DNA of 64,000 bases from Tubulanus polymorphus (GCF_964204645.1 NC_134030.1:22032210-22096209); one strand, 5' to 3'; positions 1 to 64,000 are shown, counted from the first letter of the stretch. A program made the numbers and translations. Notes: generated by a model from the letters alone, not told the origin.

Positions 1-60
1 TTACTGCACATATTCTCAGATATCGGTTTGATAATTTTAGGTGTTGTTTTCTCTTTGTAG

Positions 61-22240
<22,180 letters not shown>

Positions 22241-23324
22241 TACCTAGCCGTCGTACCCCAAAAGGTTTGATTTGACACTAAAATCAGTTGTTGCATTGCA
22301 AGAATCAGGAGTTAACCTCTAATGGACAGTTTATCATCAAACGTTGAAGGGAACCCGTAACAACGACTGGTATTCAGACTAGTACACAGGATTATAACCG
22401 CCAGTCTCTAGTGGTGGAACTGGGTCTGGGTGGAACTGGGTGTAACTCACAACTGTGGAACTGTGTTTTGTATCACGCTATTATCAAGATGTTTGTTAAT
22501 CTCTTTTTGGGCTCGAATCATTTGAGATTTTATACGAAAAGAAAAAGAAAAAGAGATGAACACAGTTTCTAATAAAATATTTATCTTTGTTATTTGGTTG
22601 TATGTAATTTCTGCGCTATTTGATTACTGTAGATCATTGATTAATTATTGCTGAAACAACTAATTATAATAACATAAGTTAATCATAAAATATATTTTTT
22701 GCTTTCATAAACTCTCATAAAATACTGATTATATATTTCTCGTTTTTCGGCGTCGTATCTGTTTTTTTTCGCTAGCGAGAAAACTTCTCTTTGTTTTGCT
22801 GAAATCTGTGAAGGTTCACATTTGATTGTTTGACTTTTATCAGTCAAAATACTGAAATGTGCTAAAATATACAGTGTAACTGAAGTAGATGAAATACAGT
22901 GTAACTGAATGATTGCAGTATTGTACCGTAGTTGTAACTATATCGAGCAGAAATAAATTGTAAACGAAATTGCTTTTTGCTAAATCATCAGCGGTTGTTC
23001 TTGGGGAATATTAGGCCTACATTATCGTCCAACTTACGCTGTATAACTGTATTTTGATACAATGTAACTGGTTTACTGTTTTACTATACATAAAATATGT
23101 GTTAAGTTAAAAACTGTAAATATGCATTACTGATTGATTTGATAAGTTACTGCATTACTGATTGGTTTGATTGATCATTGAAAACTGTGATAAGTTTTAT
23201 TCCATTTGAAAAAGTTTTAAAAAACTTCGTGCTGTATTTTTTGCTAGAAATTGCTAATAATGTAACGTGCTAATTTTTTGCTTTATTCGCTTAAATAAAA
23301 TAATTTATCTATGTAAATAAAGTC

Positions 23325-23505
23325 ATTTATTTCTTTTCTATCAACTGCAGCCGGAGTAGAATCGACCCCGGGTCGGATGAGGTTGACCCTTGGTCATGTC
23401 CAATCTTACCAATAGCTTCCCGTTAACCCAAACTCTAGCCGAATAGGACGCGAACCTAAAATCTTCGGTGTGCCAGCCGGGCACGCTAACCACTAGGCCA
23501 TAGAC
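23325..23505 (-). mobile_element. tRNA-derived SINE
   Basis: Minus strand: A box TGGCCTAGTGG, B box GGTTCGCGTCC, non-tRNA body and A-rich tail. Confidence 0.6.
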
Positions 23506-24243
23506 AAATAGTTCTTCAACGGGTTTGTAAATGCGTCTGATCAGTGTGGTGAACATTTATCTGTGGTGACTATCAGTCGGGTGTGTGGTGACTGATGACC
23601 ATTCAGGTGCGGTGACTGTCGAGTCAGATGTGGAGACACTATTCACTAACAGTGCCCGCTCTATCATTCTGTGTTACAGTTACAGCAGTTTCAATGCAAT
23701 TGTCAGCAATTTCTAAGGAAGTCGTTTTGTCCTGCAGCTCCTAAAAGTTGCCTCTTTTTCCATAGATGAAGTAGTCAAAATCACACCTTGTATCCATCTC
23801 TGAGACCTCTGCCTTCGCGACATCGTGAATGTATTTTACAATCTCTCGGAATTAATATCTTTTATTGTATTTCATTAAGATTTTCTAATTGATATCTAAA
23901 AGTTTGATAATTTTTGATTTTTCAGTTTCTAAAAATGTATACCTTATTTTGAGTGGAATGGATTGATTTTAGTAGAGACCCGCAGTTTATGGAGCGTAGA
24001 TGGATTATAAAAGTAATAGTTCATTGACTCCAATAGGTGTAACATGCGATACATTGTTAAACCATTCTTGTCGTACGTGGCGTTGACCTCTTTTACCCGA
24101 CTGGTATTTCTTCACACCTAAAGGTGCTCGCACATGTCTCCCGTTATATCAAACGAGCACCGATACCTCTTGTGAAAAAATCATGAAATTCAACGAAAAG
24201 CTTAAGATGTAACTGATTAAAGGTGAGTTTGTTGAAGTATTTA

Positions 24244-24551
24244 ACTCCACTCCAGTCGGATCTGTTCAACTCGGAGATAACCGTTCAACTCGGAGATAAC
24301 CGTTCAACTCGGAGATAACCGTTCAACTCGGAGATAACCGATCAACTCGGAGATAACCGATCAACTCGGAGATAACCGTTCAACTCTGAGATAACCGATT
24401 AATCAGAGATAACCGTTCAACTCGGATGTTGAAATATGTTTTTACGGCAGTATTTAAGAAATACATATCATCCAACTCGGATATCCCTCATCAAGTCGGA
24501 CACGTTTTTTTGCGGTTCCAAAAGATCCGACTTGAGCGGAGTCTACTGTAT
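24244..24551. mobile_element. MITE carrying a 19-bp tandem repeat (GTTCAACTCGGAGATAACC); paralog at 49893-50179
   Basis: Inverted ends ACTCCACTCCAGTCGGATC / GATCCGACTTGAGCGGAGTCTACTGTA; about 8 internal repeat units. Confidence 0.6.
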
Positions 24552-24933
24552 TCAAGAATAAGAGTCAAACTTATATACTAGGCCTATATGCCACAATTTT
24601 ATTATTCAATTTTCTGACCTAAATTCTAAAATTCTAGTGAAACTTTCGACGATTTTGAAATATTTTCTGAAAGCGGTGAAAACTATGCATTTTGTACAAA
24701 AATAAATTTACAAAGCAGTCACTATTTGTGCCCCTGGACTTTGGACCCCGGGGCTGATATGAAGGTCATACGATTATTGAAGGACGACCAGTGATTTTAA
24801 CACCTTTCGCTTCCTGCTCAACGCTCGAATATATTGAATGTATCACCGGCGCTGATCATCAAAATCTTATCTTTAACTTCCTCAATTATCAGACAAAGTG
24901 GAACTCGATTTTTATTCTGTACTCTGTATCACA

Positions 24934-27900
24934 ATGATGAACACACGTTTATTCGTAATAATCTACATAGTTTTATTAAAACTTGGAAACTTAAACACCG
25001 CAGAAACATCTGGAAATAAGACGCATAATTCAAGTAAGTCACTTGAACCAATGATAGCTTTTCTGTTGTGTCGATTTCATAGATTTCTGTCGATGAGAAT
25101 TCAACAATTCAAGGTGTTTGAGACTCCCCGTACATAGGTCTAGCTATACTAACGGGATCTATAAAGGGCCTGTCATGTGAATAAATTTCCTAGAAGATGT
25201 TGCAGGCCCGTATGCTGCCTTTCTTTGTTGTGGGCAGTTCTCGATTACTGTATAGGAGGGGAGCGTTTTGTGGGGATTCCCCAAGAAAACTTTGATCATT
25301 TAAAGCCGTCAGTTTGAATTCATTATGTATAGCTGTAAACAAACGACTGTGTAGGACGATACGTGATGGGAAATGTAGTCTAAAAATTCGGAACTAGAGA
25401 TTTTGCTGGGGGGGGGGGGGGTCACGTGGTGGAAAAAGGACCTCAATAGATTATTCGAAGTTTGTGCGTTTGTTTCATAGACTATTCATATTTATTTATT
25501 CGTTTCAGTGATTTATCCGAAGCCTGTTCCCGATGGAAAACCCGACATCAAAACAAAAGGACAGACGATTGAATATATTTGTAGAACTAGTGTTAAATAT
25601 CCTACAGTTATATTCCAAAAGAAGAGAAGAGATTCAGAACAATGGGAAACAATTCCAGACGAACTGATTCGTATAACTAGAAATGTGAAACATATTACTT
25701 CTGCTTCACTAGAATTCAAAGCAGATTTCAAACTGCACAATGGAACAACATTTAGATGTCTCGTTCTTAAGGAAGGCCAAACAGATTTTGATTATCTTCA
25801 GTTTGATCTAATCGTAGTTCATCGAACTGGTAAGTAACAGTTTTAAAATGTGAACCTTCCCAGTCTGGAATCCTGCTACTAAATAAACATCGAATCTATC
25901 AAAACAAATTAATATTGAAACACAGCATCTCTGTTACTTTTAAATTACTTCGCAGTCGATTGCATGGATTTATAGTTTAGCAGCTACGTATCAAAAGTGC
26001 GTTTATTGTAGCGTATGACATGTACATTTTAATGCATTCTGGAACTTATAGAAATGATTCTCAAATTGACGGCCATACGACTCAGCGTGAAATTCATATT
26101 TCTGTTTAACGGATGAACATAGCCGACAGTTTAATTTGTTGTAGCTTCCTCTTTCATATACCCGTCATTTGTTCATCCATTTCTATCTCCGCACAAACAT
26201 ATCTTCTTGTGTCAACTACTAATTTCAAGGTCGCTTGATGAGTTGTTGATTTTAGATGCTGTATATTTGATATCTAAAAACCTGAATTTCTTCATTTAAA
26301 AAGTAAAAAATTGTCGCCCTCGTCACTTTTGGAATTGGGAATAAGGTTTTTTATTTATGTCTTTTTATTTCAAAAGGGATGTAAAAATAATAAGTATCGG
26401 CCGTTCTTGTAACTTTACCAAAAAGGGGTCGATGAGGAACACCATATTTATTTGCGTGGCCTTAATGCACGCGTCAGTAAACTAACCAAACTAAACCCAA
26501 CCACAAACAGTCAAAGTTACTTTCTACATTTGATTGTTTTTCTCATTTCAGATTTGAATCAAATCCCGGCGACTGAAATCAGTAAATCAGGGTCAGTATC
26601 TATTTCACTTAGCGCACTACAAATAAATCATATTCTATATGTGAATCATTTCTTTGTTGTCGATGCTTTTTGTGAAATAATTTTGAATTGATATCTCACT
26701 CGTCTCATTGGCTTCCGATTAACAGTTCACCAATCATTATTCATCTCAATTTTCACATTTTGCCACAAAAGGTAACAGTAAGGGCAATTGCAAAATATGT
26801 GACCTCGATATCGCTACCACAAGCCCTGCCTTTTCACATCTGGGCCCAGTTGCACAGTCTTGGCTTAAGTCCAAAAGTCCTCTTAAACCTTAAGACTGGT
26901 CATAAGTTGTTAGATCTAGTATAAAAGAAAGTTGGTCTTAGACCAGTGTTAAATCTAAGCCATGACTGTGCAACCGGCCCCAGTTGCACGGTCGTGACTT
27001 AAGTCCAAAAGTGGTCATAATCTTAAGACTGTCCTTAATTTATTAGATTGGCTTTAGAACTAAGTTGGTCTTAGACTGGTCTTAAGTCTAAGCCATGACT
27101 ATGCAACTGGCCTCTGTTCTGCTGATTTATCTTAATTGTAAATTTCGTCCTTTTCATTCAGAGTTCGTCTGCTTACTGCTGAAAATGTGGCCTCGAAAAA
27201 CAAGGTCATTATAAATTTAAGTAATAATCAAACTAACTTGTCAAATAAAGTTCCCCGGATCCCAGACACAGAGTCGAATTAAACCCACTGAACTGTGAAC
27301 CTCGATTTAGGATATAAAAGCGAATTGAATTTTATAATATAAACTGAATGATTAATTGATTGATATTTGCAGCTTGTGTTGAGGTTTGATTCCATTCTGT
27401 TCGTTTCTAGTTTATACCCGCGAATTGTCATCCGGTATATTCTACATCCTTCGAGTTTTCCTTTTTTTCTTTCTCTGACCAAATCGGTATACAGACTGGA
27501 CCGGACCACAAACCTGACTGGACCATGATGATAATTTACATCGCTTGTGGAGTTATCGGTTTCCTCCTCGTCATCGTTATCATCGTTGTCATCGTCGTTT
27601 GCAGGTTTGTACTCAATAATCTCGGGCAGATTTCATATCTAAGATAATCCACCTATGACGTCATATTAAAACGTGAAATAATTTGATAAATCAGTGACGT
27701 TTCCCAAAAAGATGTCTTCATTCGTAAATTTGTATCTACCCATGCGCCGATTACTGGCTGAGTCAATCTCAAATCAGCAGGAATAATTCAATATCATGAC
27801 CGAAATATCCGAAATCTAAAATCTCTTCACCGCTTAAATCACCCATGTTTCAGACGCAGGCGATTGCCAGGTGAAGGTCGTGTGGAGGTTGCGACACCGC

Positions 27901-28364
27901 AGGTACTCGACGTCTATGACGAGTTGTATGATGACATAGATTCTGTTACTGTAACTGACAAACTGCACACCAGCGATCAGAAAGTTACTACAGATCCGTA
28001 CGTGAATATCGAGACCGGGAACGGCAAAGACACAGCTCCGTACATGGATATGGCAGCCGCGAAGGGTAAAGACACAGCTTCATATATAGATATGGAAGCC
28101 GGGAAGGGCAAAGACACAACTCCTTATATGGATATGGGACCCGGGATAGAAGAGGATACGTACAGGAGTACGGAAACCGGGAAGGACAAACACACAACTC
28201 CTTACACGAATACCGGAGCCGAGAAGCGCAAAGATAGACATAGTTACGTGAATACCGAAGCCGGAAAGGCGCGCCATTTGAAGAAAGATACTGATGAACC
28301 CGTGAAAGATGATGTTGAACTTTATTCTTACGCTACTGTTCAATATACTCGCAATAGGCGTTAG
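24934..28364 (+). CDS. R-Tyr copy 1: single-Ig-domain type I membrane receptor with a tyrosine-repeat cytoplasmic tail
   Basis: Exons: 24934-25033 (signal peptide MMNTRLFVIIYIVLLKLG), 25509-25829 (Ig-like, YIC...W...FRC), 26552-26591 and 27162-27204 (stalk, less certain), 27495-27604 (TM IIYIACGVIGFLLVIVIIVVIVVC), 27854-28364 (RRRR + tail with 12 Tyr). Phases join in frame. Likely 5' UTR exon donor near 24222. Confidence 0.8.
25509..25829 (+). CDS. Ig-like domain exon of R-Tyr copy 1
   Basis: 321-nt phase-1 exon (tttcag / gtaagt) with two Cys, a Trp and the FKADFKLHNGTTFRC motif; matches ORF 25508..25837. Confidence 0.8.
26840..27116. mobile_element. Tandem pair of about 140-bp palindromic MITEs (single copy at 52494-52636; fragments near 36840, 38870, 61950)
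   Basis: TIR GGGCCCAGTTGCACAGTC / GACTGTGCAACCGGCCCC. Confidence 0.7.
27854..28364 (+). CDS. Terminal exon of R-Tyr copy 1: Tyr-motif repeat cytoplasmic tail
   Basis: Acceptor tttcag; ORF 27864..28364; 42-bp/14-aa repeats such as PYMDMAAAKGKDTA. Confidence 0.8.
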
Positions 28365-30091
28365 AGGGCGCCATTGAGCAAACGACTACTGATTATACAT
28401 ATGCAAAACATAAGGCTAGAAACAATTGATTATTTTTCATAATCTGCTGAGCTCAAAAGTTGAATCAGCTGCATGCATACATTATTTCTTTCTAAAAATA
28501 ACAGACCCGACAGTTTTAGTAATGAACTGACTACATATCTTATTCTAGTTCACAAAAATGTTCGGGTCGACTAGGAGAAACAATTAGGTATGATTCACTA
28601 GCCTAAGTTTTAAGTTTTTGATATACACGGCATTTGTAGATTAGACTAAGAAACATCAATTCACTTCAACAATCATTCAAATTCCACTTTTAGCAAAATC
28701 CACATGGAGAATGCTTCAGTTTACAGGGCAGTATATATTTTATGATATTCAGCTACCAATGGCCTATAGTTCGTAGACTCTTATGAGGAGTTTTAAGTGC
28801 CAAATTGACTTGTCAATCATCTTCAGGGGCGGATCCAAGTAAGGCCGAAGCCTCCCCTTATCTCTTTTGCCAAGAAAATATTTTCACAACATGGATAAGG
28901 AATGTAACAAATATAGTAGAAAGTCTTTGTCATTCATTTTGTACTTGATTTACTCTAGATGCCCCCAGAAAATGATCCAATCCTGATTCCCCTAAAAAGA
29001 TATATAAAATATGGTATAAAATCCGTCAGTCTTATTCTTTTCTTGATGATTTCTTTTCTTTTTTCCTCTTTTACTACTTCGGTCAAACAAGATACATTAC
29101 ACGATGGTAAAAGCTTTCCTAAAATAGATGTGTTTTAAGATTTCATTCAGAAGTATCGACGGATGAGGATTCCGGAATACTGGACGGTCAAACATTCCAC
29201 ATTGTTGGGACAGTGAACTTCAAAGCTCTATTGCCAAATGACCTTCTTGGAGACAGGTTTGACTAGAGGTGTTATCATTTATATCGACTCATATTCTATT
29301 CATCCATTATTAGATCAAGCACATTCTAATGATCTTAACATTTTATCAATATGTTCATTTCAGTTACTTTCACTTTGTCTCACTTTAAACCCATGTTTTA
29401 GTCTCTGGTTTGCAATTACACATTTTTTCATTTAATCAGACGGTTCACAGATCATTTCGTGCCTCGATATTTACCAACCAATCACTTCGTGCCTCGATAT
29501 TTACCAACCAATGATATGTAGATGAACCGACCGATGTGTTTTACCAGGTGTTATCATTTATATTGACTCATATTCTATTCATGCACAGCGTTTATCGTTG
29601 ACTCAATACATTTTCATAGTTCTATTATTCACCCTCTAAGGATTATATTTTAGTGGATACTTCCATTTTTCCACATATTTTCTTCGGGCTGATAGAACAT
29701 CTTATGTGAAGTTAACAATTGATCGATCAGATTTTTTGACTTTTTAAATGCATCAGAATCGAGGATTAGTTGCTTTGTTTATGGATATTTAGAGTAGTTT
29801 CACTTTGTTTTTATTTCATTAAGGTAAAAATCATTTCCTCCTCTTTTCACATCTGGGTTTCGTTTCATGAAAAGTTTTAAGCTTTAGACAGTTAAATATG
29901 AATTGTTGTCCTCATTACAAACTTGAAGTAACCAATCATAGCAGCTGAACTTGAGAGATTCAAGTTATTTTTACTCTGTTTTGTAATATTGGACCCTGAG
30001 CGAGACTCCTGGTTTTGATGTACACATGTCTTGTATGCAGTGACTATCCATCACTTGGACGTTACCAAAAATACAAATGAAATTGAAATGC

Positions 30092-30276
30092 TGGTCGAAT
30101 TTATACTAGGAATAGTTCGTTAACTCATTCGTCGCCTAGGAATCGAATTGACGTTTCGTCTTCGTAGTTCTCAACTTCCGCGACGATTCTAAAATGAGAA
30201 CTACTAAACCGAAACGTAATTTCGATTCCTAGGTAGTTAAAGAAATACGATCTTATTCCTAGAATTAATTCGGCCA
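30092..30276. mobile_element. Palindromic MITE-like element (paralog at 55628-55812)
   Basis: TGGTCGAATTTATACTAGGAATA ... TATTCCTAGAATTAATTCGGCCA; whole-length imperfect hairpin. Confidence 0.6.
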
Positions 30277-31488
30277 TCATATCGCAAACCCCCAATCAGT
30301 CGCTTGCCGGCTCTGCCAAGACTGAAGATCCTTTCAGAATCGAATCAATTATACCAAGATAAGATATTTATTTCACTCCAACCATAAGAATGGTACATGG
30401 AGGCAAGATTGAATACAAAATATGAAATATAAAAATTTACAAAACATAAACAGAATTTTATACATATATACTTTCAGACGAAGCAAATGGGAAAATAATT
30501 CTATAACAAAGTTAAGATCCAATTTTTCAGTAAAACAATTTACAGACAAAGCAAGTACAGAGATTGAATTATATACAGCAAAATATACCACACGTATATA
30601 CATATACACAATTTACTGGAGGGATTTTTATAAACTTAAACCTAACTCGATAAATTGAGCTATTTGTGGGTTAGGATTCGTTAATATTTCAGAGTTTCTG
30701 GACATACTTAAATGGATGGAATTATCACGCATATCATATAACATTAATGAAATGCAGGTCATCTCCTCTCTGACTACGTTACAGGCGGGGCACAGTCTTT
30801 CACTTCTGTATGAGCGTTCGATCGATTATCTACCGGTAACAAATAGGAACCAATTCTGAATTCGAATGAGCTATAACGCGCAAGACGATACTTTCAAATT
30901 TTCAGATATTTTCTTGAACATGTGAATTTAAAAATCGATCATGTATAAGTTTGTTAGACTTTTAAGTGCATATCAGAATGGGTTCACTTAGAATGGTTTA
31001 GTTTGATAGAATAGTTTTACTTTTCTGATAAACCGTTTTTTTTTTCATTAAGGAAAAACTCACTTTTTCCTAGACTCACTACACACCAGAGTTTGGTTTA
31101 CTCCAGACGGTTATATTTGAAATCCATTATGAGTTTGAATTACTGTCCTCATTAAAAACTTAAGTCCTCACCTCATCAAGTTTTCTTCACTTTTTTGTGA
31201 ATCGGACCCTGACCTACTAGTCTCCTAGACTTGATGTATATCTGTCTGCGGTAAAACATTGAACACTTTTAATTTTTGAACACCATTAATTTCCTATTCT
31301 TTTTGCATACCGGTAGAGATATTTACATCTTAACAATTGAACACCTCGTCTATAGAATTTCATAAAAATGCTTGTCGACAAGAGGTTCCCTGTGGAAGAG
31401 CGTTGTTGTAAGATGTGTTTAACTGTTTTCTGTATGTGACGATGATCTGAGGTTTGTGTCTTTATATCCAGGTAATGAATGAATCAAG

Positions 31489-48984: not shown

Positions 48985-49166
48985 TTCATTTATTTCTTTT
49001 CTATAAACTGCAGCCGGAGTAGATCCGACCCCGGGTCGGGTGAAGTTGACTCTTGGTCATCTCCAGTCTTACCAATAGCTTCCCGTTAACCCCAACTCTA
49101 GCCGAATAGGACTCGAACCTAAAATCTTCAGCGTGCCAGCCGAGCACGCTAACCACTAGACCATAC
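48985..49166 (-). mobile_element. tRNA-derived SINE (paralog of 23325-23505)
   Basis: A box TGGTCTAGTGG, B box GGTTCGAGTCC. Confidence 0.6.
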
Positions 49167-53500: not shown

Positions 53501-53886
53501 AGAAAGTTACTACAGATCCGTACGTGAATATCGAGACCGGCTACGACAAAGACACAGCTCCGTACATGGATATGGCAGCCGCGAAGGGTAAAGACACAGC
53601 TTCATATATAGATATGGAAGCCGGGAAGGGCAAAGACACAACTCCTTATATGGATATGGGACCCGGGATAGAAGAGGATACGTACAGGAGTACGGAAACC
53701 GGGAAGGACAAACACACAACTCCTTACACGAATACCGGAGCCGAGAAGGACAAAGATAGACATAGTTACGTGAATACCGAAGCCGGAAAGGCGCGCCATT
53801 TGAAGAAAGATACTGATGAACCCGTGAAAGATGATGTTGAACTTTATTCTTACGCTACTGTTCAATATACTCGCAATAGGCGTTAG
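50544..53886 (+). CDS. R-Tyr copy 2: single-Ig receptor with a tyrosine-repeat tail
   Basis: Exons 50544-50643, 51168-51488, 52209-52248, 52684-52726, 53018-53127, 53376-53886; near-identical paralog of copy 1 (4 aa differences in the Ig exon, one extra Tyr in the tail). Confidence 0.8.
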
Positions 53887-56800
53887 AGAGCGCCATTGAG
53901 CAAACGACTACTGATTATACATATGCAAAACATAAGGCTAGAAACGATTGATTATTTTTCATAATCTGCTGAGCTCAAAAGTTGAATCAGCTGCATGCAT
54001 ACATTATTTCTTTCTAAAAATAACAGACCCGACAGTTTTAGTAATGAACTGACTACATATCTTATTCTAGTTCACAAAAATGTTCGGGCCGACTAGGAGA
54101 AACAATTAGGTATGATTCACTAGCCTAAGTTTTAAGTTTTTGATATACACGGCATTTGTAGATTAGACTAAGAAACATCAATCCACTTCAACAATCATTC
54201 AAATTCCACTTTTAGCAAAATCCACATGGAGAATGATTCAGTTTACAGGGCAGTATATATTTTATGATATTCAGCTACCAATGGCCTATAGTTCGTAGAC
54301 TCTTATGAGGAGTTTTAAGTGCCAAATTGACTTGTCAATCATCTTCAGGGGCGGATCCAAGTAAGGCCGAAGCCTCCCCTTATCTCTTTTGCCAAGAAAA
54401 TATTCTCACAACCCGGATTAGGAATGTAACAAATATAGTAGAAAGTCTTTGTCATTCATTTTGTTCTTGATTTACTCTAGATGCCCCCAGAAAATGATCA
54501 ATTCCTGATTCCCCTAAAAAGATATATAAAATATAGTACAATATTCGCATTCAATCAGTTTGTTTGTCTTATTCTTTTCTTGATGATTTCTTTTCTTTTT
54601 TCCTCTTAACTACTTCGGTCAAACAAGATACATTACACGATGGTAAAAGCTTTCCTAAAATAGATGTGTTTTAAGATTTCATTCAGAAGTATCGACGGAT
54701 GAGGATTCCGGAATACTGGACGGTCAAACATTCCACATTGTTGGGACAGTGAACTTCAAAGCTCTATTGCCAAATGACCTTCTTGGAGACAGGTTTGACT
54801 AGAGGTGTTATCATTTATATCGACTCGTATTCTATTCATCCATTATTAGATCAAGCACATTCTAATGATCTTAACATTTTATCAATATGTTCATTTCAGT
54901 TACTTTCACTTTGTCTCACTTTAAACCCTTGTTTTAGTCTCTGGTTTGCAGTTACACATTTTTTCATTTAATCAGACGGTTCACAGATCATTTCGTGCCT
55001 CGATATTTACCAACCAATCACTTCGTGCCTCGATATTTACCAACCAATGATATGTAGATGAACCGACCGATGTGTTTTACCAGGTGTTATCATTTATATT
55101 GACTCATATTCTATTCATGCACAGCGTTTATCGTTGACTCAATACATTTTCATAGTTCTATTATTCACCCTCTAAGGATTGTATTTTATAGGATACTTCC
55201 ATTTTTCCACATATTTTCTTCGGGCTGATAGAACATCTTATGTGAAGTTAACAATTGATCGATCAGATTTTTTGACTTTTTAAATGCATCAGAATCGAGG
55301 ATTAGTTGCTTTGTTTATGGATATTTAGAGTAGTTTCACTTTGTTTTTATTTCATTAAGGTAAAAATCATTTCCTCCTCTTTTCACATCTGGGTTTCGTT
55401 TCATGAAAAGTTTTAAGCTTTAGACAGTTAAATATGAATTGTTGTCCTCATTACAAACTTGAAGTAACCAATCATAGCAGCTGAACTTGAGAGATTCAAG
55501 TTATTTTTACTCTGTTTTGTAATATTGGACCCTGAGCGAGACTCCTGGTTTTGATGTACACATGTCTTGTATGCAGTGACTATCCATCACTTGGACGTTA
55601 CCAAAAATACAAATGAAATTGAAATGCTGGTCGAATTTATACTAGGAATAGTTCGTTAACTCATTCGTCGCCTAGGAATCGAATTGACGTTTCGTCTTCG
55701 TAGTTCTCAACTTCCGCGACGATTCTAAAATGAGAACTACTAAACCGAAACGTAATTTCGATTCCTAGGTAGTTAAAGAAATACGATCTTATTCCTAGAA
55801 TTAATTCGGCCATCATATCGCAAACCCCCAATCAGTCGCTTGCCGGCTCTGCCAAGACTGAAGATCCTTTCAGAATCGAATCAATTATACCAAGATAAGA
55901 TATTTATTTCACTCCAACCATAAGAATGGTACATGGAGGCAAGATTGAATACAAAATATGAAATATAAAAATTTACAAAACATAAACAGAATTTTATACA
56001 TATATACTTTCAGACGAAGCAAATGGGAAAATAATTCTATAACAAAGTTAAGATCCAATTTTTCAGTAAAACAATTTACAGACAAAGCAAGTACAGAGAT
56101 TGAATTATATACAGCAAAATATACCACACGTATATACATATACACAATTTACTGGAGGGATTTTTATAAACTTAAACCTAACTCGATAAATTGAGCTATT
56201 TGTGGGGTAGGATTCGTTAATATTTCAGAGTTTCTGGATGTACTTAAATGGATGGAATTATCACGCATATCATATAACATTAATGAAATGCAGGTCATCT
56301 CCTCTCTGACTACGTTACAGGCGGGGCACAGTCTTTCACTTCTGTATGAGCGTTCGATCGATTATCTACCGGTAACAAATAGGAACCAATTCTGAATTCG
56401 AATGAGCTATAACGCGCAAGACGATACTTTCAAATTTTCAGATATTTTCTTGAACATGTGAATTTAAAAATCGATCATGTATAAGTTTGTTAGACTTTTA
56501 AGTGCATATCAGAATGGGTTCACTTAGAATGGTTTAGTTTGATAGAATAGTTTTACTTTTCTGATAAACCGTTTTTTTTTTTCATTAAGGAAAAACTCAC
56601 TTTTTCCTAGACTCACTACACACCAGAGTTTGGTTTACTCCAGACGGTTATATTTGAAATCCATTATGAGTTTGAATTACTGTCCTCATTAAAAACTTAA
56701 GTCCTCACCTCATCAAGTTTTCTTCACCTTTTTTTGTGAATCGGACCCTGACCTACTAGTCTCCTAGACTTGATGTATATCTGTCTGCGGTAAAACCAGA

Positions 56801-57026
56801 ACACTTTTAATTTTTGAACACCATTAATTTTCTATTCTTTTTGCATACCGGTAGAGATATTTACATCTTAACAATTGAACACCTCGTCTATAGAATTTCA
56901 AAAAAATGCTTGTCGACAAGAGGTTCCCTGTGCAAGAGCGTCGTTGTAAGATGTGTTTAACTGTTTTCTGTATGTGATGATGATCTGAAGTTTGTGTCTA
57001 TATTTCCAGGTAATGAATGAATCAAG

Positions 57027-60000
57027 ATGAAGAATCTATGGAGGAATCTGCAGCATTTCGTATTGATCTGCGTGATTTTACTGTTTTATCTCATAGCGTA
57101 CAACAACAGCCCAAAAGCGTTTAGACTTAAGAGAAATACCGGTAAGAAAACGTTAAAGAACATATCGTAGAGTATATATGGAATGTGTATTACATAAGAT
57201 AAAACTTATCACCAGACTTTGGAAACATCTGGGACAAAATGGTAGTTATTCAACCACTTGAACTGATAAAATTTAATGCTTCGAATTAAAAAACCTACAA
57301 TCTCTTAAGTGTTTACATTTTACAATGGAAAAGCCTAGACCTGACCTCAATGTCACAGTAATCATAGGAATTCCCCACACAATGTTCTGCAGTAAGTGTA
57401 TACTGTCTATAACGACTGAATTGTACCAAATATCCACATACATTGATTCTGTAGCCTCTGAATGTATTGAGAAGTACCGTCAGACTGAAAAGGGTTTAAA
57501 TCGGTACAATTAGTTTGAATATTGACCGTGGCAGCATCTCACAGGCTGTGTCTTAAAATCATGGATAAATGCGTGTGAATATAAGTTTTGAAAAATATCA
57601 AACAGATGATTGTTTATTTCTTGTTAAACCTCTTCAAACGGTGACAATTTTCGGAAGACAATTTCCTTAAACAAGGGGCTGTAGTTGCTCTGAAGTCGGT
57701 TTAAGGTGAATGAAATTGAGATGTTAATTGGTCAATTTTGAACAATGGCTCTGACAATAGAAAGCTATATATTGCCAGCACCTGATGCAGTTGTACTGGA
57801 CAGTGTGAATGTATTACCGGGTACAAGAATATTACGTATATTGTGTATCTGATATTTCAGCACCTGATGGAGTTGTACTGGACAGTGTCAATGTACTACC
57901 GGGTACAAGAATATTACGTATATTGTGTATTTGATATTTCAGCGCCTGATGGAGTTGTACTGGACAGTGTCAATGTATTACCGGGTACAAGAATATTACG
58001 TATATTGTGTATTTGATATTTCAGCGCCTGATGGAGTTGTACTGGACAGTGTCAATGTATTACCGGGTACAAGAATATTACGTATATTGTGTATTTGATA
58101 TTTCAGCGCCTGATGGAGTTGTACTGGACAGTGTCAATGTATTACCGGGTACAAACATATTACTGTCGCAGGAAGGTAAAACTGTCAGTATTACCTGTAA
58201 ACAGAGCAGCTCTACAGCGACTGATGTAGAATTCCAGCTACAAGTGTATCATGGAGGCACCTGGACTGCATTACCTACAGCATCAGCACCAGTTTGGGAT
58301 GTTGTACTTGACGCTGGAAACATCTATAAATGTGTGGCCACTAACTCGGCAGGAATAAAGGGAAGTCACATCTATGAATCAGATGTGATCAGTGAGTATG
58401 GTGACAATTTGAACTCTAAGAATCGGCTTGTCACGTGATAATTTATTTCTCCTCTGCAACGGAACCCAATTTCAATGTTGCTGGGATAGGCTGAAAATAA
58501 GCCATGATTATAAAATCATCAGGAAAAGTCAAACGTTGACTCTACAAGAACTTATCGTCTTTTCTGAACTGATTGACAGATCTCTGGTACTGACTCGGAT
58601 GACAATTACTAAACCAGTAGCCTTCATACATTTACTGTTCATTGTCGGTTGTCTGACAATACATGTATTTTTTGTGCCAAATTCCAACGCTCTTATTCTC
58701 TGTGGAAACAAGTCAGCATATCCTTTCATTCAGCACTTATCAAATAATGCTGGGTAAATAGAATAAAAGTTTCCTGTGCACTTGGTATTTTTTGTATATA
58801 TTTTGTATTGTAGGTATAAAAATAAATGAAAACCCGTGTAAACTGCATGAATTCAAACCATCACTAGCTTGTACTTGTAAAGCCACTAGCAAGATCGGTA
58901 ATTCAAACATGGCGGTAAAATGGTATGCTGATGGATTTACTGAAGGATCAACGGATATTGATCAGATCCCCGATCAAGGCGTGAATACTCCGGTGAAAGA
59001 TGGAGTTATCAACAGGAATCAGATGCGGTTTAATTTAATGCTGTACGCAATATTGATTCAATGTCGGTTATGGAAGTATAATGGGATAGAGCTACCGAAA
59101 CTAACACTTCAAGAACAAATACTACACCAAACTCCAATGAACGTTACGTGTAAGTTGGAGAATATTTCCATGAGAGATTTTTCATACGATATCAGAGTGA
59201 CAATAATGCATGTTACATCGTTTATTCTATTGGTAACTGCCCATAGTTTGAGATTTAAGAGTTACTATTTCATAACGACTGGTGATCGTGCCTATGACAT
59301 GTTTTCAAATTCTTTCGTTTTAATATTTGGTCCAAAGAAGGTATTTCAAATACTTAAGCGAATTGTTAATAATAACATTAAAAGGACTAGAATATGATTG
59401 TGCATGTATTTGCTTTTGAAATCGAACCTACTAGAAAACGATTTCTTTCACCTTCTATGATTAGGGCCTAGGCTTAAGATTTTGAGCCCACATGGAAAAA
59501 TTGCAGCGAAATCGGTTAAAATGTTGACATAAAAAGTTCGTTTCTGTAACAATTGTCGTCTTCGGGTATTCTCGTGGCTATATCAGGGATTTCTAATTTG
59601 TAATATGGGACAAAGCTTCTTGAACCGGGACCATAGGATCACGTACAACTCACCAGAATAAAGGATTCTTTTCATGAGTGCGATAGATACGCCACCTATC
59701 GTTGATATGTATTGTTGCAAAAACAAATAAACTATATTACAATATAATTATGTCGGGAGTTACACCGTTATATTTCCGTCGATTCAAATTTCGACGCCCT
59801 TGATAAACACACATTCCTCGGAGCGAAAGTAATATTTTACCATGTTTTATGGACGGACGTTTCCTCACGTAAATCAACGATTTTGCACCGATCAGTGAAA
59901 TTGAAGTGGACAAACATGATATCATCCAAAAATGTATTTGCATCTTTATCTTTCAGATTTTCCCGATGAAATTCAAACACCAGATACTTTCACCGGAGAA

Positions 60001-63000
60001 CCTGACATTAGAAATGAAGGAGATGTTGTAGAATATACTTGTAGAACAGTGATAGGAAGGCCCGATCCTACAGTGATATACCAGCAGAAGAGAAGAGGTT
60101 CTGAACAATGGGAGCCAATTCCTGATCCACAACCTCGTAAAGTACCTCTCAAAATGGGTTTAAAAGGTTTTGACACGACGTACAAGTTCAATGCTGATTT
60201 CAAACTGCACAATGGAACGTCATTTCGATGTGCTGTAAAGGAGAACCTTACATTTCCAGAACCTCAGCAATTTAATCCAATCATTGTTCATTGTAAGTAA
60301 CAGTTTCTTTTCGAATTCGAGAAATAAATAATTTTCCCTGCAACAATACAGACCCCAGTGGTAGTACAGACCTATTCGCCATTAGCATGTCACAATGTAA
60401 CCATGCTAAGTAGGAACGTGGCAGAGTCTCGCGATGTCATCAGGTTCAAATCCCTGCCGAGGGAGGAACGTGGCAGAGTCTCACGATGTCATCAGGTTCG
60501 AATCCCTGCTGAGAGAAGATGGGTCTACTATGACAGGGCTTAAGAACTGTGCTAGGTCAGATATTACTTTTACTAATGTTTTGTTTGTTTTTCGATCAGA
60601 TTTTGCTGCACCAGTTTACAAGAAATCGAGTGAAAATAAAACACACGCAGCGTATATTGTAACAGTTAATAGTAACCCATTGACTCAGCAAGTTACATGT
60701 GACCCTCCAGCTGTCGTTCAAAAACTATCAAACTCTCAGTGGAATATAACGATACCTATCGTAAACAGTACCACAACTGACTATAGAGGGCGGTGTTTGA
60801 CTGACGGTATTAATGAAAGGGTTATTGATGTCGCTGGTTATCATCACGCCGGTCCAACTGATGAACCAGGTAAGATTCCGGGTCACGACTGGATGAATTT
60901 TACATGAATTTGAAGATTCAAATGATTCAATTCCATGACATTATAAAACTCGAGGCCATCATCTCTTAACTCGAAATCATTTCTACACAATCAAACAATT
61001 TACTTATGAAAAGTCGTTATTTTTCTAAATTGTCACAAAACCTATTAATATATTTCAAAGTCTCAATTTACTAAGTCATTTGTCATTATTATTGGGTCTC
61101 ATTTTACTAGGTGTAAGTCGTCATTCATTTAAAGCGTCACATACATACATATTACAAAAAAATAATTTTTGTATTTTACCTAAAGTGTAAATCATTTAGA
61201 TTAGTCAGCACAGCGGAGGAGTCTCGTGACGTCATCAGATTTAAATCCGTGTGCGATGACGTAATTCTCTGTGTCGTCAGAATTGAGCGTTTTCTATTAT
61301 TATCTGTGAATTTATCACATTCAAATATTACACAATGATTTAGCATCTTTAACTTTCTATCTTGAGGCTGTTTGACCCAATCAAGGAACAATTAATTTTC
61401 TCCCATTTTAAAAACAACTTATTTACTTTATTCAGAGACTATTTGAGCTTTGAAATTAAGGAACAATTAATTTTTGTTTGACCTAGTTAATTATTCAATT
61501 CAATTGCTGTTACTTTTATCAATAGTAACAATGGAACTATTTCTAGCTTTATATAATTCAATTCAATCGCATCACCGATTAATTTGAATTTCCGTTTCAG
61601 ATGCAGGAAATGGAGGCAGAGTGTTTGGTGCTGTAATCGGTATACTGATATTACTGATTCTGATAATACTGTTTATACTGTGGCGTCGTGGCTGCTGTAA
61701 GTTTTACCTAAAACCATCATTAAATCTTTAAAAAAAATAAACAAACTGCAGAATGAAATACTGTATTAGGTGTAGAAAACCTAATGATGAACTTTGTAGA
61801 TGTGGAAATTGTAAGTTCTGTAATAATTCATTTACATAAAGCTTAAAATTGAAAAATTGTGCATAAGGCTTGAGGGATTCGAGGGTTCCCCAGGTGGCCA
61901 GATACAGTGGTTGCTCCTCAATTATCAGTCCACATTTTTAATCTCGGGACCCTAGTTGCACAGTTTTATTCCAAAAGTGGTCGTAAACTATTCTACTGGT
62001 CTTAAGTTGTTAGATTTGCTATTGGACCAAAATGAGCTTAGACTGGTTTAAGCTCAACTAGACATATTGGCCACAGAACTAAAACTGTCTTAAACTGGTC
62101 TTGAATACAAGCCATCATGGTGCACATTAGCCCTATTACAAAATATTTAGTTCATTGTCAATCAAAATGTTGCGATCGTAGATTATCATAATATACAGAA
62201 TGCTAGAAATCTAAAAATAGTGTACACAGCTGGAGGGATCCGAGCCAGATACAGTTCTTGATTACTTGCCTACGTAGGTTCTCCATTTTCTCGTTGGGAA
62301 GTATCGTTACGTTGTTCGGTGACGATAGTGATAAATTATCACATATGCCTACCGGGTATCGGTAATGAAAACTTGCGCCCGGTTCCTTGTCCCAGTTACC
62401 ATTTATTGCGAACTAGAAGAAATTCTGTAAATCCGTGATTCCGAAATAGTACCGGTTTAAACTCAAGAAAATTACGCGGTATCATTGGTTCAATTATCTC
62501 ATAGCATTAGTATCCATGACTATCTTTAGTGGGTGGCTCCAACAATATCCAAATCACACTGTTTCTTTATTGGGTTGATTTGTCAGGTGAATGTGCATCA
62601 TGTAGACAAACAGTATTTCTGTTCTCTAATTTACAGTACCGTGTTTGGTTCCGAAACCTGAAGATGCGATTGCATTGTTGCGTTGGACAAGTGAAACCTG
62701 GTATGAAAAAGGTAAGATTCTCTCACATGATTTACTGCACATATTCTCAGATATCGGTTTGATAATTTTAGGTGTTGTTTTCTCTTTGTAGATCATGAGT
62801 ATTGGGTGAAAACACGTGAACAACTTCAGCCAGGTATTTATAGAATTATTAACCCTTTATTTCTATAACATATAGAATATCTCGCATGAATACAGTTCAT
62901 AGTTTTAGAAATTATCCACTAATCATCTGAATGATATACAACTGATTTTGCTTCATTATCAAAACCGTAATTATCAATTTAAGTTTATGGTTAACAACGT

Positions 63001-63939
63001 AATTTTTGACTATTTTATCGTATGTTTTTGGTAGATGTTTAATGCAATTAACTGACAATTATTTCTATCTGTGAAGCACATTTATAATAATGGCCTCTTA
63101 TATTAACTCACTGGATACAATGGAAACACGTTTACGCAATGAAATAAACCAAATAATTTGGACCAAGAAACTTTTAGATTTTTCAGAAACTATTCCATAT
63201 TCACGTACTAAATCCTGGACTTCACTTGTAGCAAGTGAGGATCCACCAGGTGCAAGGAGGCAATTCCTTGCTATTTTTAGGGACTGAACTTTTCGTGAGA
63301 AATAAGAAAAAGCATGTGAAATCCCTGATAATGTGTTTGCCTAAGCGTTGTTGTCGTCGTTAACCGGCACTTTTTTCGGCAGTCCTCCAGTTCATGGTGT
63401 TTCATCGATCGTTCATTGATGTGTTTGGTTGAATGACTGGACTGGTTCCGGGTCACATGTACTCTGATCGTGCCTAGAAAACGTATCCACGCATCTAATT
63501 TTAAACAATTTTCTGCGGAAGAACGCCCACTAATTTGTGCACCCCTCCCTGAAATCCTGGATCTGCAGCTGTTCTGCGGCAATAGAGGATTCCCATTGAA
63601 AATCAACTATACGCGAGAAACGTTTTTAGATGTCGTCTTTTTTCATGTTTATCTGTAGCTAATATTTGTGTTGTTTGTTTAACAGTTAAAACTGAAGACT
63701 TTGAGGTCATTGAAAAGTCATTCAGTCCAGGTATATTATTCATTGTGATTTCATTTCAATAAAACAATATAAACTCACATGATTCATCGATAAATCAACT
63801 ACCTGTTTGTTAACATCGATGAATTCATTTAGAAAATTAATTTGTTGTCAATTTTTCTTTCTAGAAATTTTCAGAATAATTAAAGATGTTTACGGAACTG
63901 AGAATGATTGGGAGTTAACGAGAGATAAGGATAAACAAG
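57027..63939 (+). CDS. R-long copy 3, 5' part (continues beyond the window)
   Basis: Exons: 57027-57141 (SP, RLKR), 58107-58391, 58814-59149, 59957-60292, 60600-60869 (D1-D4), 61601-61696 (TM), 62637-62711, 62792-62833, 63686-63730, 63865-63939. The TM exon splices in frame to give LFILWRRGC-LPCLVPKPEDAIALLRW. Confidence 0.7.
57779..58148 (+). repeat. 82-bp intron/exon-boundary repeat with 5 acceptors
   Basis: Exon starts at 57779, 57861, 57943, 58025, 58107. Confidence 0.9.
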
Positions 63940-64000
63940 GTAAGAGGAGTGAGTGGTAAGAGTAGTGAGTGGTAAGAGTAGTGAGTGGTAAGAGTAGTGA
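63940..64000 (+). repeat. 16-bp minisatellite (GTAAGAGTAGTGAGTG) starting at a splice donor; runs off the window
   Basis: Direct reading. Confidence 0.85.

Follow-up and report, generated by a model that had tools for sequence, protein, structure and literature searches.

Contig C6 of Tubulanus polymorphus carries two kinds of immunoglobulin (Ig) receptor gene side by side, one with a tyrosine-motif tail (R-Tyr) and one with a long tail (R-long), raising the question of whether they form a receptor pair in an immune or allorecognition locus or are independent genes that happen to duplicate together. We addressed this in a window of 64,000 nucleotides (C6:22,032,210-22,096,209; positions below are counted from its first letter) and across the genome.

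A two-gene cassette in tandem array

Self-comparison of the window revealed 85-97.5% identity between 19076-41130 and 44408-63952, a tandem segmental duplication of ~25.5 kb, and placed the end of a third unit at 1-2632. Together with the gene coordinates, it confirmed the order proposed in the initial annotation, R-long / R-Tyr / R-long / R-Tyr / R-long on one strand, the genes being the R-long8 tail, R-Tyr A, R-long9A, R-Tyr B and R-long10B on the + strand. The interval given for these five genes, 22241-64000, however, does not contain the leading R-long, whose stop codon lies just upstream at 22238-22240. The features are as follows.

19076..63952 (19076-41130; 44408-63952), no strand assigned: two successive cassette-bearing duplication units, period ~25.5 kb, against 35-43 kb in the eight units upstream
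1..22240, + strand: R-long copy 8, 3' part, micro-exon cytoplasmic tail and last exon (stop 22238-22240; C-terminus ...GTQV)
24934..28364, + strand: R-Tyr copy 9 ('A'), complete, six exons, splice sites read directly
24934-25033, + strand: R-Tyr A signal peptide exon
25509..25829, + strand: R-Tyr A Ig-domain exon, phase 1-1, Cys-Trp-Cys core, domain type common to R-long Ig3
26552-26591 and 27162-27204, + strand: R-Tyr A stalk exons
27495-27604, + strand: R-Tyr A transmembrane exon
27854..28364, + strand: R-Tyr A cytoplasmic tail exon, stop included
31489..47939, + strand: R-long copy 9 ('A'), complete, splice sites read directly
31489-31603, + strand: R-long9A signal peptide exon
32792..33082, + strand: R-long9A Ig1, membrane-distal
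33180-33515, + strand: R-long9A Ig2
34296..34631, + strand: R-long9A Ig3, akin to R-Tyr Ig (common ...FKADFKLHNGTxFRC... core)
35507-35776, + strand: R-long9A Ig4
36475-36573, + strand: R-long9A transmembrane exon, by membrane scan
36663-47907, + strand: R-long9A micro-exon tail, ~17 micro-exon candidates
~47815-47939, + strand: R-long9A last exon (C-terminus ...GTRV, then stop)
50544..53886, + strand: R-Tyr copy 10 ('B'), complete; coordinates projected from an alignment of the 10 copies
50544-50643, 51168-51488, 52209-52248, 52684-52726, 53018-53127 and 53376-53886, + strand: R-Tyr B exons
57027..64000, + strand: R-long copy 10 ('B'), 5' part, by tblastn projection and membrane scan; its tail runs past the window end
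57027-57141, 58107-58391 and 58814-59149, + strand: R-long10B signal peptide, Ig1 and Ig2 exons, approximate, by tblastn projection
59957-60292, 60600-60869 and 61595-61696, + strand: R-long10B Ig3, Ig4 and transmembrane exons, approximate, by tblastn projection and membrane scan

Extension of the flanks and a genome-wide count revealed an array larger than first claimed: 10 R-Tyr and 10 R-long genes alternate strictly over ~400 kb of a single strand, with two further R-long genes upstream, and the window covers the last 2.5 units. In each cassette, R-long follows R-Tyr head-to-tail at a distance of 3-6.5 kb, on the same strand. The 10 R-Tyr tail exons are near-identical, intact and all on the + strand at a spacing of 25.5-42.9 kb, and within the array they alternate 1:1 with the Ig1 and Ig3 exons of R-long. 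When a block is duplicated in tandem, gene order is preserved whether its genes cooperate or not. Sequencing runs that contain the locus behave as DNA, and one possible RNA run does not contain it.

Uncollapsed haplotypes or mis-joined reads could in principle mimic such a pattern, the more so as the individual assembled was probably also the source of the DNA runs. However, there are ten to twelve units and not two; sequence differences of 3-15% and large insertions or deletions (period 25.5-42.9 kb) separate the units, each of which is a distinct mosaic; read contigs map here at 90-95%, 95-99% and >99% identity, as expected with many paralogues; and the array is interior to a 23-Mb contig. 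An assembly artefact is therefore very improbable. With 10 R-Tyr and 12 R-long copies, the arrangement is far beyond chance and beyond a two-haplotype artefact, and the tandem array of two-gene cassettes in T. polymorphus is genuine.

Structure of the R-Tyr and R-long proteins

R-Tyr is a type I membrane protein of 374 aa encoded by six exons, with a signal peptide, one Ig domain, a stalk and a transmembrane segment; its 170-aa tail contains no kinase domain. The exon chain of copy A agrees with RefSeq proteins of sister copies (P0002, P0019), its phases are consistent, and its exon lengths total 1125 nt, that is, 374 codons and a stop; copy B preserves its AG/GT sites and is free of internal stops. 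All 10 array copies retain six intact exons, AG/GT sites and frame. Copies 1 and 3 are identical to XP_074653785.1 and XP_074653349.1 (RefSeq 'uncharacterized protein'); stand-alone RefSeq proteins exist for 3/10 copies (90% cluster), window copies A and B not being among these. The Ig domain matched Pfam ig at sub-threshold level only (E 0.0028). Its Cys, Trp and Cys core residues are invariant in the alignment, its AlphaFold2 model has a pLDDT of ~90 across the domain, and Foldseek against the PDB matched it to I-set and V-type Ig domains with probability 1.0 and TM 0.6-0.68. As modelled, the domain is a beta-sandwich with a Cys...Trp...Cys core and is predicted to have the Ig fold.

The tyrosine-motif tail noted at the outset indeed holds 12 Tyr in ~170 aa, including three YxxM, three YxN and a terminal YSYATV; the motifs of copy A are YDEL/YDDI, YVNI, YMDM, YIDM, YMDM, YTNT, YVNT and the terminal YSYATV. 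All tail tyrosines are preserved in 10/10 array copies, and the tail dN/dS is 0.33. YxxM is the hallmark of the whole R-Tyr family (3 in each of the 10 array copies, 1-12 per paralogue tail), while the C-terminal motif takes the form YSYA[ST]V. Motif scans of the array R-Tyr tails found no ITAM, no canonical ITIM, no ITSM and no acidic-triplet YxxL, i.e. no hemITAM. A p85-type iSH2 domain (PF16454) scored above cut-off on contig C2 of the same genome. With a kinase-free tail, conserved YxxM and a p85-type reader encoded in the genome, R-Tyr has the predicted make-up of a YxxM docking receptor. CD28/ICOS-type co-stimulatory receptors and DAP10-type adaptors follow the same logic of docking PI3K p85 and Grb2. 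R-Tyr resembles them in its single Ig ectodomain, its one membrane pass and a kinase-free tail with conserved YxxM partly overlapping YxN, but its tandem YxDM units number three to many against one, it lacks a stalk cysteine for covalent dimers, and no sequence relationship to CD28/ICOS/DAP10-type proteins was found.

R-long comprises four Ig-like exons, a transmembrane exon, a long tail of phase-1 micro-exons and a C-terminal T-x-V. The long tail reported for this receptor was borne out by 38 stringent micro-exon candidates (AG/GT, frame-preserving, phase 1) in 1-22240, where the minus strand gave 0, and by the ~17 candidates in 36663-47907. The Ig exons of copy 8 lie upstream of the window (C6:22026430-22028723, where Ig1 and Ig3 were located). 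R-long exons are conserved in a paralogue on contig C9, and every R-long ectodomain exon inspected retains its open frame and splice sites. The hydrophobic cores of the R-Tyr and R-long membrane segments contain no charged residue. Ig1 keeps C30, W54 and C77, and AF2 models it as a beta-sandwich, with moderate confidence (pLDDT 69) and weak Foldseek matches to Ig/FnIII folds.

The best, though weak, matches of the R-long Ig profiles are the neural adhesion proteins RPTP-sigma/delta, contactin and IgLON5 (E 0.0015-0.2). On this basis R-long might mediate homophilic or heterophilic adhesion, held on PDZ scaffolds through T-x-V, with R-Tyr as a PI3K-coupled accessory and the diversity of copies serving as cell-surface identity codes; C-termini of ...GTQV or ...GTRV would also suit a junctional or neuronal scaffold, and selection is purifying overall. 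However, the matches reflect generic Ig similarity and not orthology, the variation is centred on distal-domain loops (see below), and a one-species family would be unusual for wiring molecules. HMMER and word searches of 5.8 and 1.8 billion proteins, using the R-Tyr tail and the complete protein as queries, found no protein relatives outside T. polymorphus, low-complexity matches aside. We thus consider a role in adhesion or neural wiring improbable. That all protein relatives found belong to T. polymorphus is in line with the lineage-specific family originally suggested.

Evolution of the array and pairing of the two genes

Both cassette genes stay under purifying selection, with dN/dS of 0.33-0.40 for R-Tyr and 0.25-0.58 for R-long Ig exons and dS near intron divergence (0.02-0.05). 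It could be argued that most copies are functionless pseudogenes, since 7/10 R-Tyr copies lack a stand-alone RefSeq protein and some distant family members have stop codons. Such decay is extremely improbable, as every R-Tyr copy (10/10) and every R-long ectodomain exon inspected keeps its frame and splice sites, dN/dS is 0.25-0.58, and every tail tyrosine is conserved.

Birth-and-death evolution, as anticipated in the initial annotation, is accompanied by recombination, the nearest relative differing exon by exon within a copy. For R-long9A it is copy 2 at Ig1, copy 1 at Ig3, copies 5/8 at Ig4 and copy 8 at the transmembrane exon; R-long copies 4 and 8 have identical Ig1 exons while their Ig2-Ig4 differ by ~4%. 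These comparisons show the copies to be exon-scale mosaics, among which exon-sized segments were exchanged after duplication. Ig1 is the most variable R-long exon between copies (75-100% aa), and its variation is centred on codons 33-72. Local pN/pS reached 1.2-2.5 in codons 33-64 (loop region), a small-window estimate on recombining paralogues that carries no significance test, with overall dN/dS <1 everywhere.

The Ig domain claimed to be common to both receptors is real, though R-Tyr Ig (exon 25509-25829) and R-long Ig3 (exon 34296-34631) are just 52-55% identical. In the tree one deep 100/100 branch divides them, and between the same loci R-Tyr Ig evolves ~4x faster than R-long Ig3 (branch lengths 0.59 vs 0.15). 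Vertebrate paired receptors (KIR, LILR, PILR, CEACAM1/3, Siglec-11/16) have near-identical ligand-binding domains and opposite signalling through ITIM versus ITAM adaptors. The array is like them in its clustered tandem Ig receptors with differing tails and in recombination or gene conversion among copies; the tandem duplicates, birth-and-death and inter-copy exchange common to those clusters are all found here. The 52-55% identity and the single deep branch, however, mean that R-Tyr/R-long is not a vertebrate-style paired receptor, and the analogy drawn earlier fails: one of four domains is common, the ectodomains have 1 Ig vs 4 Ig and are far from near-identical, and in place of an ITIM partner and a charged-TM ITAM-adaptor partner we found an R-Tyr without ITIM, ITAM or ITSM and transmembrane cores without charge.

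The R-Tyr-then-R-long order was found again at 10 further divergent loci, and the cassette is therefore older than the array. Genome-wide, 20/40 R-Tyr-type tails are followed, 3.0-12.8 kb further along the same strand, by an R-long-type Ig1. These pairs occur on both strands and two contigs, with R-Tyr Ig identity of 45-67% (one pair on contig C9 has an R-Tyr only 50% identical), and no arrangement other than R-Tyr-then-R-long head-to-tail was seen among the 20 adjacent pairs. The receptor pair postulated from the window thus holds in that both genes duplicate as a unit, in 10 alternating units and in the same order at the 10 divergent loci. Pairing is not obligatory, since 20/40 R-Tyr-type tails and 12/32 R-long-type Ig1 exons are unpaired and a C9 cluster at 4.2-5.1 Mb consists of R-Tyr-type genes only.

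These unpaired genes, half of the R-Tyr type and more than a third of the R-long type, and the cluster of R-Tyr-type genes alone would suit two independent receptor families lying in one duplication unit, whose alternation follows mechanically from unequal crossing-over and whose proteins do not cooperate. The lack of sequence exchange between the two Ig domains since one deep split and the ~4x faster evolution of R-Tyr Ig (0.59 vs 0.15) also favour mere neighbours. On the other hand, the arrangement is identical in 20/20 adjacent pairs on both strands and two contigs, even at 45-67% R-Tyr Ig identity, and both genes are intact in 10/10 units; we regard non-cooperating neighbours as possible though somewhat unlikely.

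Related recognition systems and a proposed role

The closest analogue of the cassette is the FF/FcoR gene pairs of Botryllus schlosseri, which are encoded as pairs, vary in copy number in pairs and undergo intergenic recombination; they are oriented head-to-head and co-expressed, and the co-receptor tail has an ITIM or hemITAM (PMC12582321). In both systems two distinct Ig-superfamily families form adjacent pairs gained and lost in pair units (here 10 alternating units and 10 pairs elsewhere, within one assembly), same-chromosome genes exchange sequence by intergenic recombination, and the smaller partner has conserved tyrosine signalling motifs, with no homologues beyond the lineage. In contrast to FF/FcoR, the cassette is head-to-tail in 20/20 pairs, carries YxxM, YxN and YSYA[ST]V motifs and not ITIM or hemITAM, lacks sushi domains, and belongs to a solitary spiralian and not a colonial chordate. 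Homology to FF/FcoR was not detected, the HMMER and word database searches with the R-Tyr tail and full protein returning T. polymorphus proteins only, low-complexity matches aside.

Hydractinia Alr proteins, for which allorecognition has been demonstrated, join an Fn3-like fold to V-set and I-set domains, and several bear an ITAM or ITIM (PMC9546547). Like the present array, the Alr genes lie in a large cluster specific to their lineage and encode Ig-superfamily membrane proteins whose cytoplasmic tails are highly divergent and contain tyrosine motifs, but they are not arranged in an alternating two-gene cassette (PMC9546547). The Alr comparison made in the initial annotation found no support as homology, since the database searches gave no homologues outside T. 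polymorphus.

We hold with moderate confidence that the array is a copied two-gene cassette in which R-long may serve recognition and R-Tyr signalling. R-long would be the recognition chain, with the variable distal Ig1 making contact with a ligand or with a surface, conspecific or foreign. R-Tyr would act as signalling receptor or co-receptor, its tail being phosphorylated by a Src-type kinase. YxDM-p85 and YxN-Grb2 are established SH2 specificities; the YxDM motifs could thus recruit the SH2 domains of a p85-type PI3-kinase adaptor and the YxN motifs Grb2. Recognition at the surface would thereby be linked to PI3K/Ras responses, for example engulfment or activation. Their joint inheritance and amplification make it most likely that R-Tyr and R-long function in the same cells and the same pathway. 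To our knowledge, allorecognition is not known in T. polymorphus, a solitary worm; an immune or non-self-recognition role for the cassette is our best guess. More speculatively, and rather unlikely as a whole, R-Tyr may be the dedicated signalling co-receptor of the adjoining R-long in a two-chain, germline-diversified system gained and lost in pairs with exon-scale exchange, an independently evolved spiralian counterpart of FF/FcoR that would use PI3K-type (YxxM) instead of ITIM/ITAM signalling and whose cassette number would probably vary between individuals.

Gene order in the window and extent of the array

A genome search placed the window at C6:22,032,210-22,096,209, on a contig of 23 Mb, and its base composition is that of AT-rich eukaryotic DNA (~35% G+C). 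Comparison of the window with itself revealed a tandem segmental duplication that repeats every ~25.5 kb, in which 19076-41130 matches 44408-63952 at 85-97.5% identity and 1-2632 pairs with the end of the duplication unit. The period is short here because a ~15 kb block in copy 8 is missing from copy 9 (2632-19076 versus 42679-44408). The initial annotation had read the order as R-long/R-Tyr/R-long/R-Tyr/R-long, R-long being a four-Ig receptor with a micro-exon tail and R-Tyr a one-Ig membrane protein with a tyrosine-rich tail. This order was confirmed, except that the leading R-long ends immediately upstream of the interval assigned to the array and hence falls outside it.

Gene order in the window (copies numbered along the array)
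1-22240, + strand: R-long copy 8, tail (stop codon 22238-22240)
24934-28364, + strand: R-Tyr copy 9, 'A'
31489-47939, + strand: R-long copy 9, 'A'
50544-53886, + strand: R-Tyr copy 10, 'B'
from 57027, + strand: R-long copy 10, 'B', 5' part

The tandem receptor array proposed initially is real and well defined, and it exceeds the size reported. Extension of the flanks and a count of the units gave 10 R-Tyr and 12 R-long copies, reaching far beyond the window. The R-Tyr tail exon is present in ten intact copies with 96-99% amino-acid identity, all on the + strand of C6 between 21,754,910 and 22,085,595 at a spacing of 25.5-42.9 kb, and the R-Tyr Ig exon and the R-long Ig1 and Ig3 exons alternate one-for-one with it. 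Two R-long copies lacking an R-Tyr lie upstream, at C6 21,682,481 and 21,719,421. In 10/10 copies the six R-Tyr exons have open frames and retain every AG/GT, the membrane exon of copy 7 (L007) carrying an in-frame 9-nt deletion, and all tail tyrosines are kept in the array copies.

The 10-12 units are 3-15% divergent, differ by large indels and each have their own mosaic pattern, which rules out two uncollapsed haplotypes. Read contigs on this stretch fall into three identity tiers, as expected with many paralogues. The sequencing runs that match the locus are DNA-like, with introns evenly covered and splice joints absent, and one possible RNA run gave no match to the locus.

Read-through transcription from R-Tyr into R-long was considered but is not claimed. 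On the sense strand, AATAAA is absent from the 3.1 kb that separate the R-Tyr stop from the R-long ATG (28365-31488 and 53887-57026), with 0 occurrences versus ~3.3 expected, but the depletion is too weak to carry this reading, as both strands are depleted and the introns have AATAAA freely. The first ATTAAA lies ~340 nt upstream of the R-long ATG.

Structure of the R-Tyr and R-long genes

The window's own exons were searched and counted singly, and the full-length protein was represented by RefSeq proteins of sister copies. Protein searches returned relatives from Tubulanus polymorphus only, all of them RefSeq 'uncharacterized protein' entries. Three of the ten array R-Tyr copies, A and B not among them, have stand-alone RefSeq proteins; XP_074653785.1 (P0002) and XP_074653349.1 (P0019) are exact products of R-Tyr sister copies, and a contig lookup for their annotated context found no encoding contig on record for either. 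Copy 1 has an isoform, RefSeq P0018, that lacks the signal peptide. P0017 (178 aa), from copy 4 (L004, C6:21861352-21867352), continues past the stalk exon 2 donor; lacking the membrane segment, its predicted product is possibly a soluble form.

Exons of R-Tyr A (6 exons, 374 codons in total)
24934-25033, + strand: signal peptide exon; splice sites inspected directly
25509-25829, + strand: Ig exon; splice sites inspected directly
26552-26591 and 27162-27204, + strand: stalk exons; from the low-variation region and RefSeq P0002
27495-27604, + strand: membrane-segment exon; splice sites inspected directly
27854-28364, + strand: tail exon; splice sites inspected directly

The R-Tyr Ig exon ends in phase 1 and all membrane-exon acceptors are in phase 0, a mismatch that predicted extra exons. 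Very low variation among copies at 27104-27223, together with P0002, exposed a pair of small stalk exons that carry the phase from 1 to 2 and then from 2 to 0 and match P0002, and the idea that the membrane and tail exons form a LAT-like adaptor gene with no ectodomain was thereby ruled out. The ectodomain adopts an Ig fold: an AlphaFold2 model has pLDDT ~90 across the domain, Foldseek matched it to I-set and V-type domains (probability 1.0, TM 0.6-0.68), and the Cys-Trp-Cys core is invariant in the alignment. Single exons searched against Pfam gave sub-threshold Ig matches only. Short high-copy repeats, probably a SINE or MITE, occupy R-Tyr introns at 24400-24600 and 26800-27200 (read-contig word depth 100-1000x that of the flanks); the latter is missing from several sister copies, as seen from alignment gaps.

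Twelve tyrosines occur in the ~170-residue R-Tyr tail. YDEL/YDDI sits near the membrane, YSYATV closes the tail, and three YxN motifs are present besides three YxDM motifs, the latter inside a repeating ...GKDT-x-x-Y-[MI]-DM... block. The feature that marks the entire family is YxxM, of which the paralogues retrieved have 1-12 in each tail. By the consensus definitions quoted in PMC9546547, the array R-Tyr tails contain no ITAM, canonical ITIM or ITSM.

Exons of R-long A upstream of the tail (all phase 1-1)
31489-31603, + strand: signal peptide exon
32792-33082, + strand: Ig1
33180-33515, + strand: Ig2
34296-34631, + strand: Ig3
35507-35776, + strand: Ig4
36475-36573, + strand: membrane exon

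These exons are kept in a paralogue on contig C9, and the membrane segment has no charged residue. A furin-type dibasic site directly follows the predicted signal peptide in exon 1 (31489-31603) and is kept across copies (RVKR; RLKR in copy B, RNKR in the C9 paralogue), where it may serve pro-peptide processing. The tail was surveyed with a stringent micro-exon scan (frame-preserving phase 1, pyrimidine tract, AG, open frame and GTAAGT-like donor), which returned ~17 candidates in R-long A (36663-47907) and 38 in R-long 8 (1-22240) versus 0 on the opposite strand. Both copies 8 and 9 end in T-x-V (...GTQV and ...GTRV).

Several tandem repeats accompany R-long. An 82-bp repeat lies immediately 5' of Ig1 at most R-long loci, with 2 copies at 32686-32791, 4-5 at 57755-58106 and ~24 at C6:22818668-22820579. 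It duplicates the Ig1 acceptor and the first ~42 nt, encoding APDGVVLDSVNVLP, so that each unit could act as a decoy acceptor, or else as an in-frame mini-exon of 42 nt with a weak GTACAA donor. In the Ig3-Ig4 intron, a G+C-rich 51/52-bp repeat has ~14 units in A (34702-35465) and 2-3 in B (60360-60561), yielding spurious long ORFs of 224-359 aa in three frames. A tail intron of R-long 8 contains a 154-bp satellite (9721-11135; ~9 units, 96% identity, 45% G+C), and the same tail has an internal tandem duplication of ~7 kb (5370-9098 versus 11975-17407) that carries at least six micro-exons (for instance, 6713-6796 matches 13743-13826, and 8583-8660 matches 16915-16992).

Evolution of the array copies

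To measure constraint, Nei-Gojobori counts were summed per exon, with the exons kept separate.

dN/dS among array copies (Nei-Gojobori)
R-Tyr Ig: 0.40
R-Tyr tail: 0.33
R-long Ig1: 0.58
R-long Ig2: 0.25
R-long Ig3: 0.54
R-long Ig4: 0.56

With dS in the array close to intron divergence (0.02-0.05), these values mark the copies as genes under constraint rather than as pseudogenes or globally diversifying sequences. Copies of R-long Ig1 share 75-100% identity, and in 16-codon windows pN/pS reaches 1.2-2.5 at Ig1 codons 33-64; in a model of moderate confidence these codons would fall in or between strands B, C and E, a placement that is suggestive only.

The initial annotation had also suggested birth-and-death evolution, and this is borne out by exon-by-exon mosaics among the copies. 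The nearest relative of R-long 9A is copy 2 in Ig1, copy 1 in Ig3, copies 5 and 8 in Ig4 and copy 8 in the membrane exon. R-long copies 4 and 8 are identical in Ig1 and ~4% different across Ig2-Ig4. Ig1 and the membrane exon each come in two deep types, and every one of the four possible combinations is found. Similarly, R-Tyr copy 8 has an Ig like that of copy 4 and a tail like that of copy 2. Judged from the sequences, such exon mosaicism is what unequal crossing-over and gene conversion leave behind in a birth-and-death family. Vertebrates, a tunicate and a cnidarian are known to have birth-and-death multigene clusters of Ig receptors; we know of none described in a nemertean.

Two exons each occur as two deep types that are mosaic across units, namely R-Tyr exon 1 (24934-25033; ~10% nucleotide divergence) and the R-long membrane exon (36475-36573; ~15%), far above the 2-5% of adjoining exons and introns. 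Codons 33-88 of the R-Tyr Ig exon (~25607-25774), its C-terminal half, have zero synonymous differences among the ten copies, while pS is 0.05-0.19 in the N-terminal part; this silence may reflect recent homogenisation or nucleotide-level constraint.

The two-gene cassette and its putative role

Genome-wide, 20 of 40 R-Tyr-type tails are followed on their own strand, after 3.0-12.8 kb, by an R-long-type Ig1, and 20 of 32 R-long-type Ig1 loci have an R-Tyr-type tail so placed ahead of them; no other R-Tyr/R-long arrangement was found among these 40 tail and 32 Ig1 loci. Ten of the pairs lie outside the array, on C6 at 18.3, 20.5, 22.3 (minus strand) and 22.8 Mb and on C9. Their R-Tyr Ig domains are 45-67% identical to those of the array, and the R-Tyr of the C9 pair is an intact RefSeq protein (P0004). 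The same order at divergent loci indicates that the cassette predates the array and was propagated repeatedly with both members intact. The proposed paired unit thus holds as a conserved two-gene cassette, with 20 pairs in one arrangement, although pairing of R-Tyr with R-long is not obligatory. Since block duplication alone keeps gene order and pairing is not obligatory, functional coupling of the two is something we infer.

The likeness to vertebrate paired receptors was not borne out. The R-Tyr Ig and the shared R-long domain (Ig3) are only 52-55% identical. A tree built from 28 domains splits the two sets by a single 100/100 branch of length 0.85 and shows no trace of recent exchange between them. 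The architectures are different, and the signalling hallmarks of paired receptors are missing. A structure-based prediction of binding between R-Tyr Ig and R-long Ig3 gave no answer (score 0.00) and weighs neither way. R-long Ig1 and Ig3 profiles compared with solved structures gave marginal, generic Ig matches only (E >= 0.0015), with no orthology to a conserved adhesion molecule.

SH2 domains of p85 recognize pYxxM and that of Grb2 pYxN, and the genome encodes a p85-type PI3K adaptor (PF16454 iSH2 domain above cut-off, on C2). These specificities are consistent with a model in which R-Tyr would be a docking receptor that has no kinase domain and whose phosphorylation leads to the recruitment of PI3K and Grb2, while R-long, with its variable distal Ig1, would be the recognition chain and both would act in one pathway. 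A putative immune or allorecognition role of the array is plausible.

The closest analogue, by comparison of gene organization, is the Botryllus FF/FcoR system, in which two Ig-superfamily families form cognate pairs, copy number varies in pairs, intergenic recombination occurs and the co-receptor has tyrosine motifs (PMC12582321). A receptor and its signalling partner inherited as a gene pair were, to our knowledge, only described in 2025, in Botryllus. The T. polymorphus pairs differ in being head-to-tail and in having YxxM/YxN rather than ITIM/hemITAM motifs; the protein searches detected no homology. With Hydractinia Alr (PMC9546547) the array has only the general theme in common. The new elements are the strict two-gene cassette and the fact that it recurs at divergent loci.

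As a second, unrelated example in a spiralian, the array would support cassettes as a recurrent solution for discriminating innate receptors. If the model is true, it provides a defined 10-cassette locus, with copy-specific markers in every exon, for work on co-expression, copy number and PI3K coupling, and places the micro-exon-tailed R-long family in a signalling context; were R-Tyr and R-long mere neighbours, the locus would still be a clean case of a young tandem array evolving by exon-scale mosaicism. A separate cluster at C9:4.20-5.08 Mb, with no R-long-type neighbour, contains at least seven R-Tyr-type genes with two Ig matches each.
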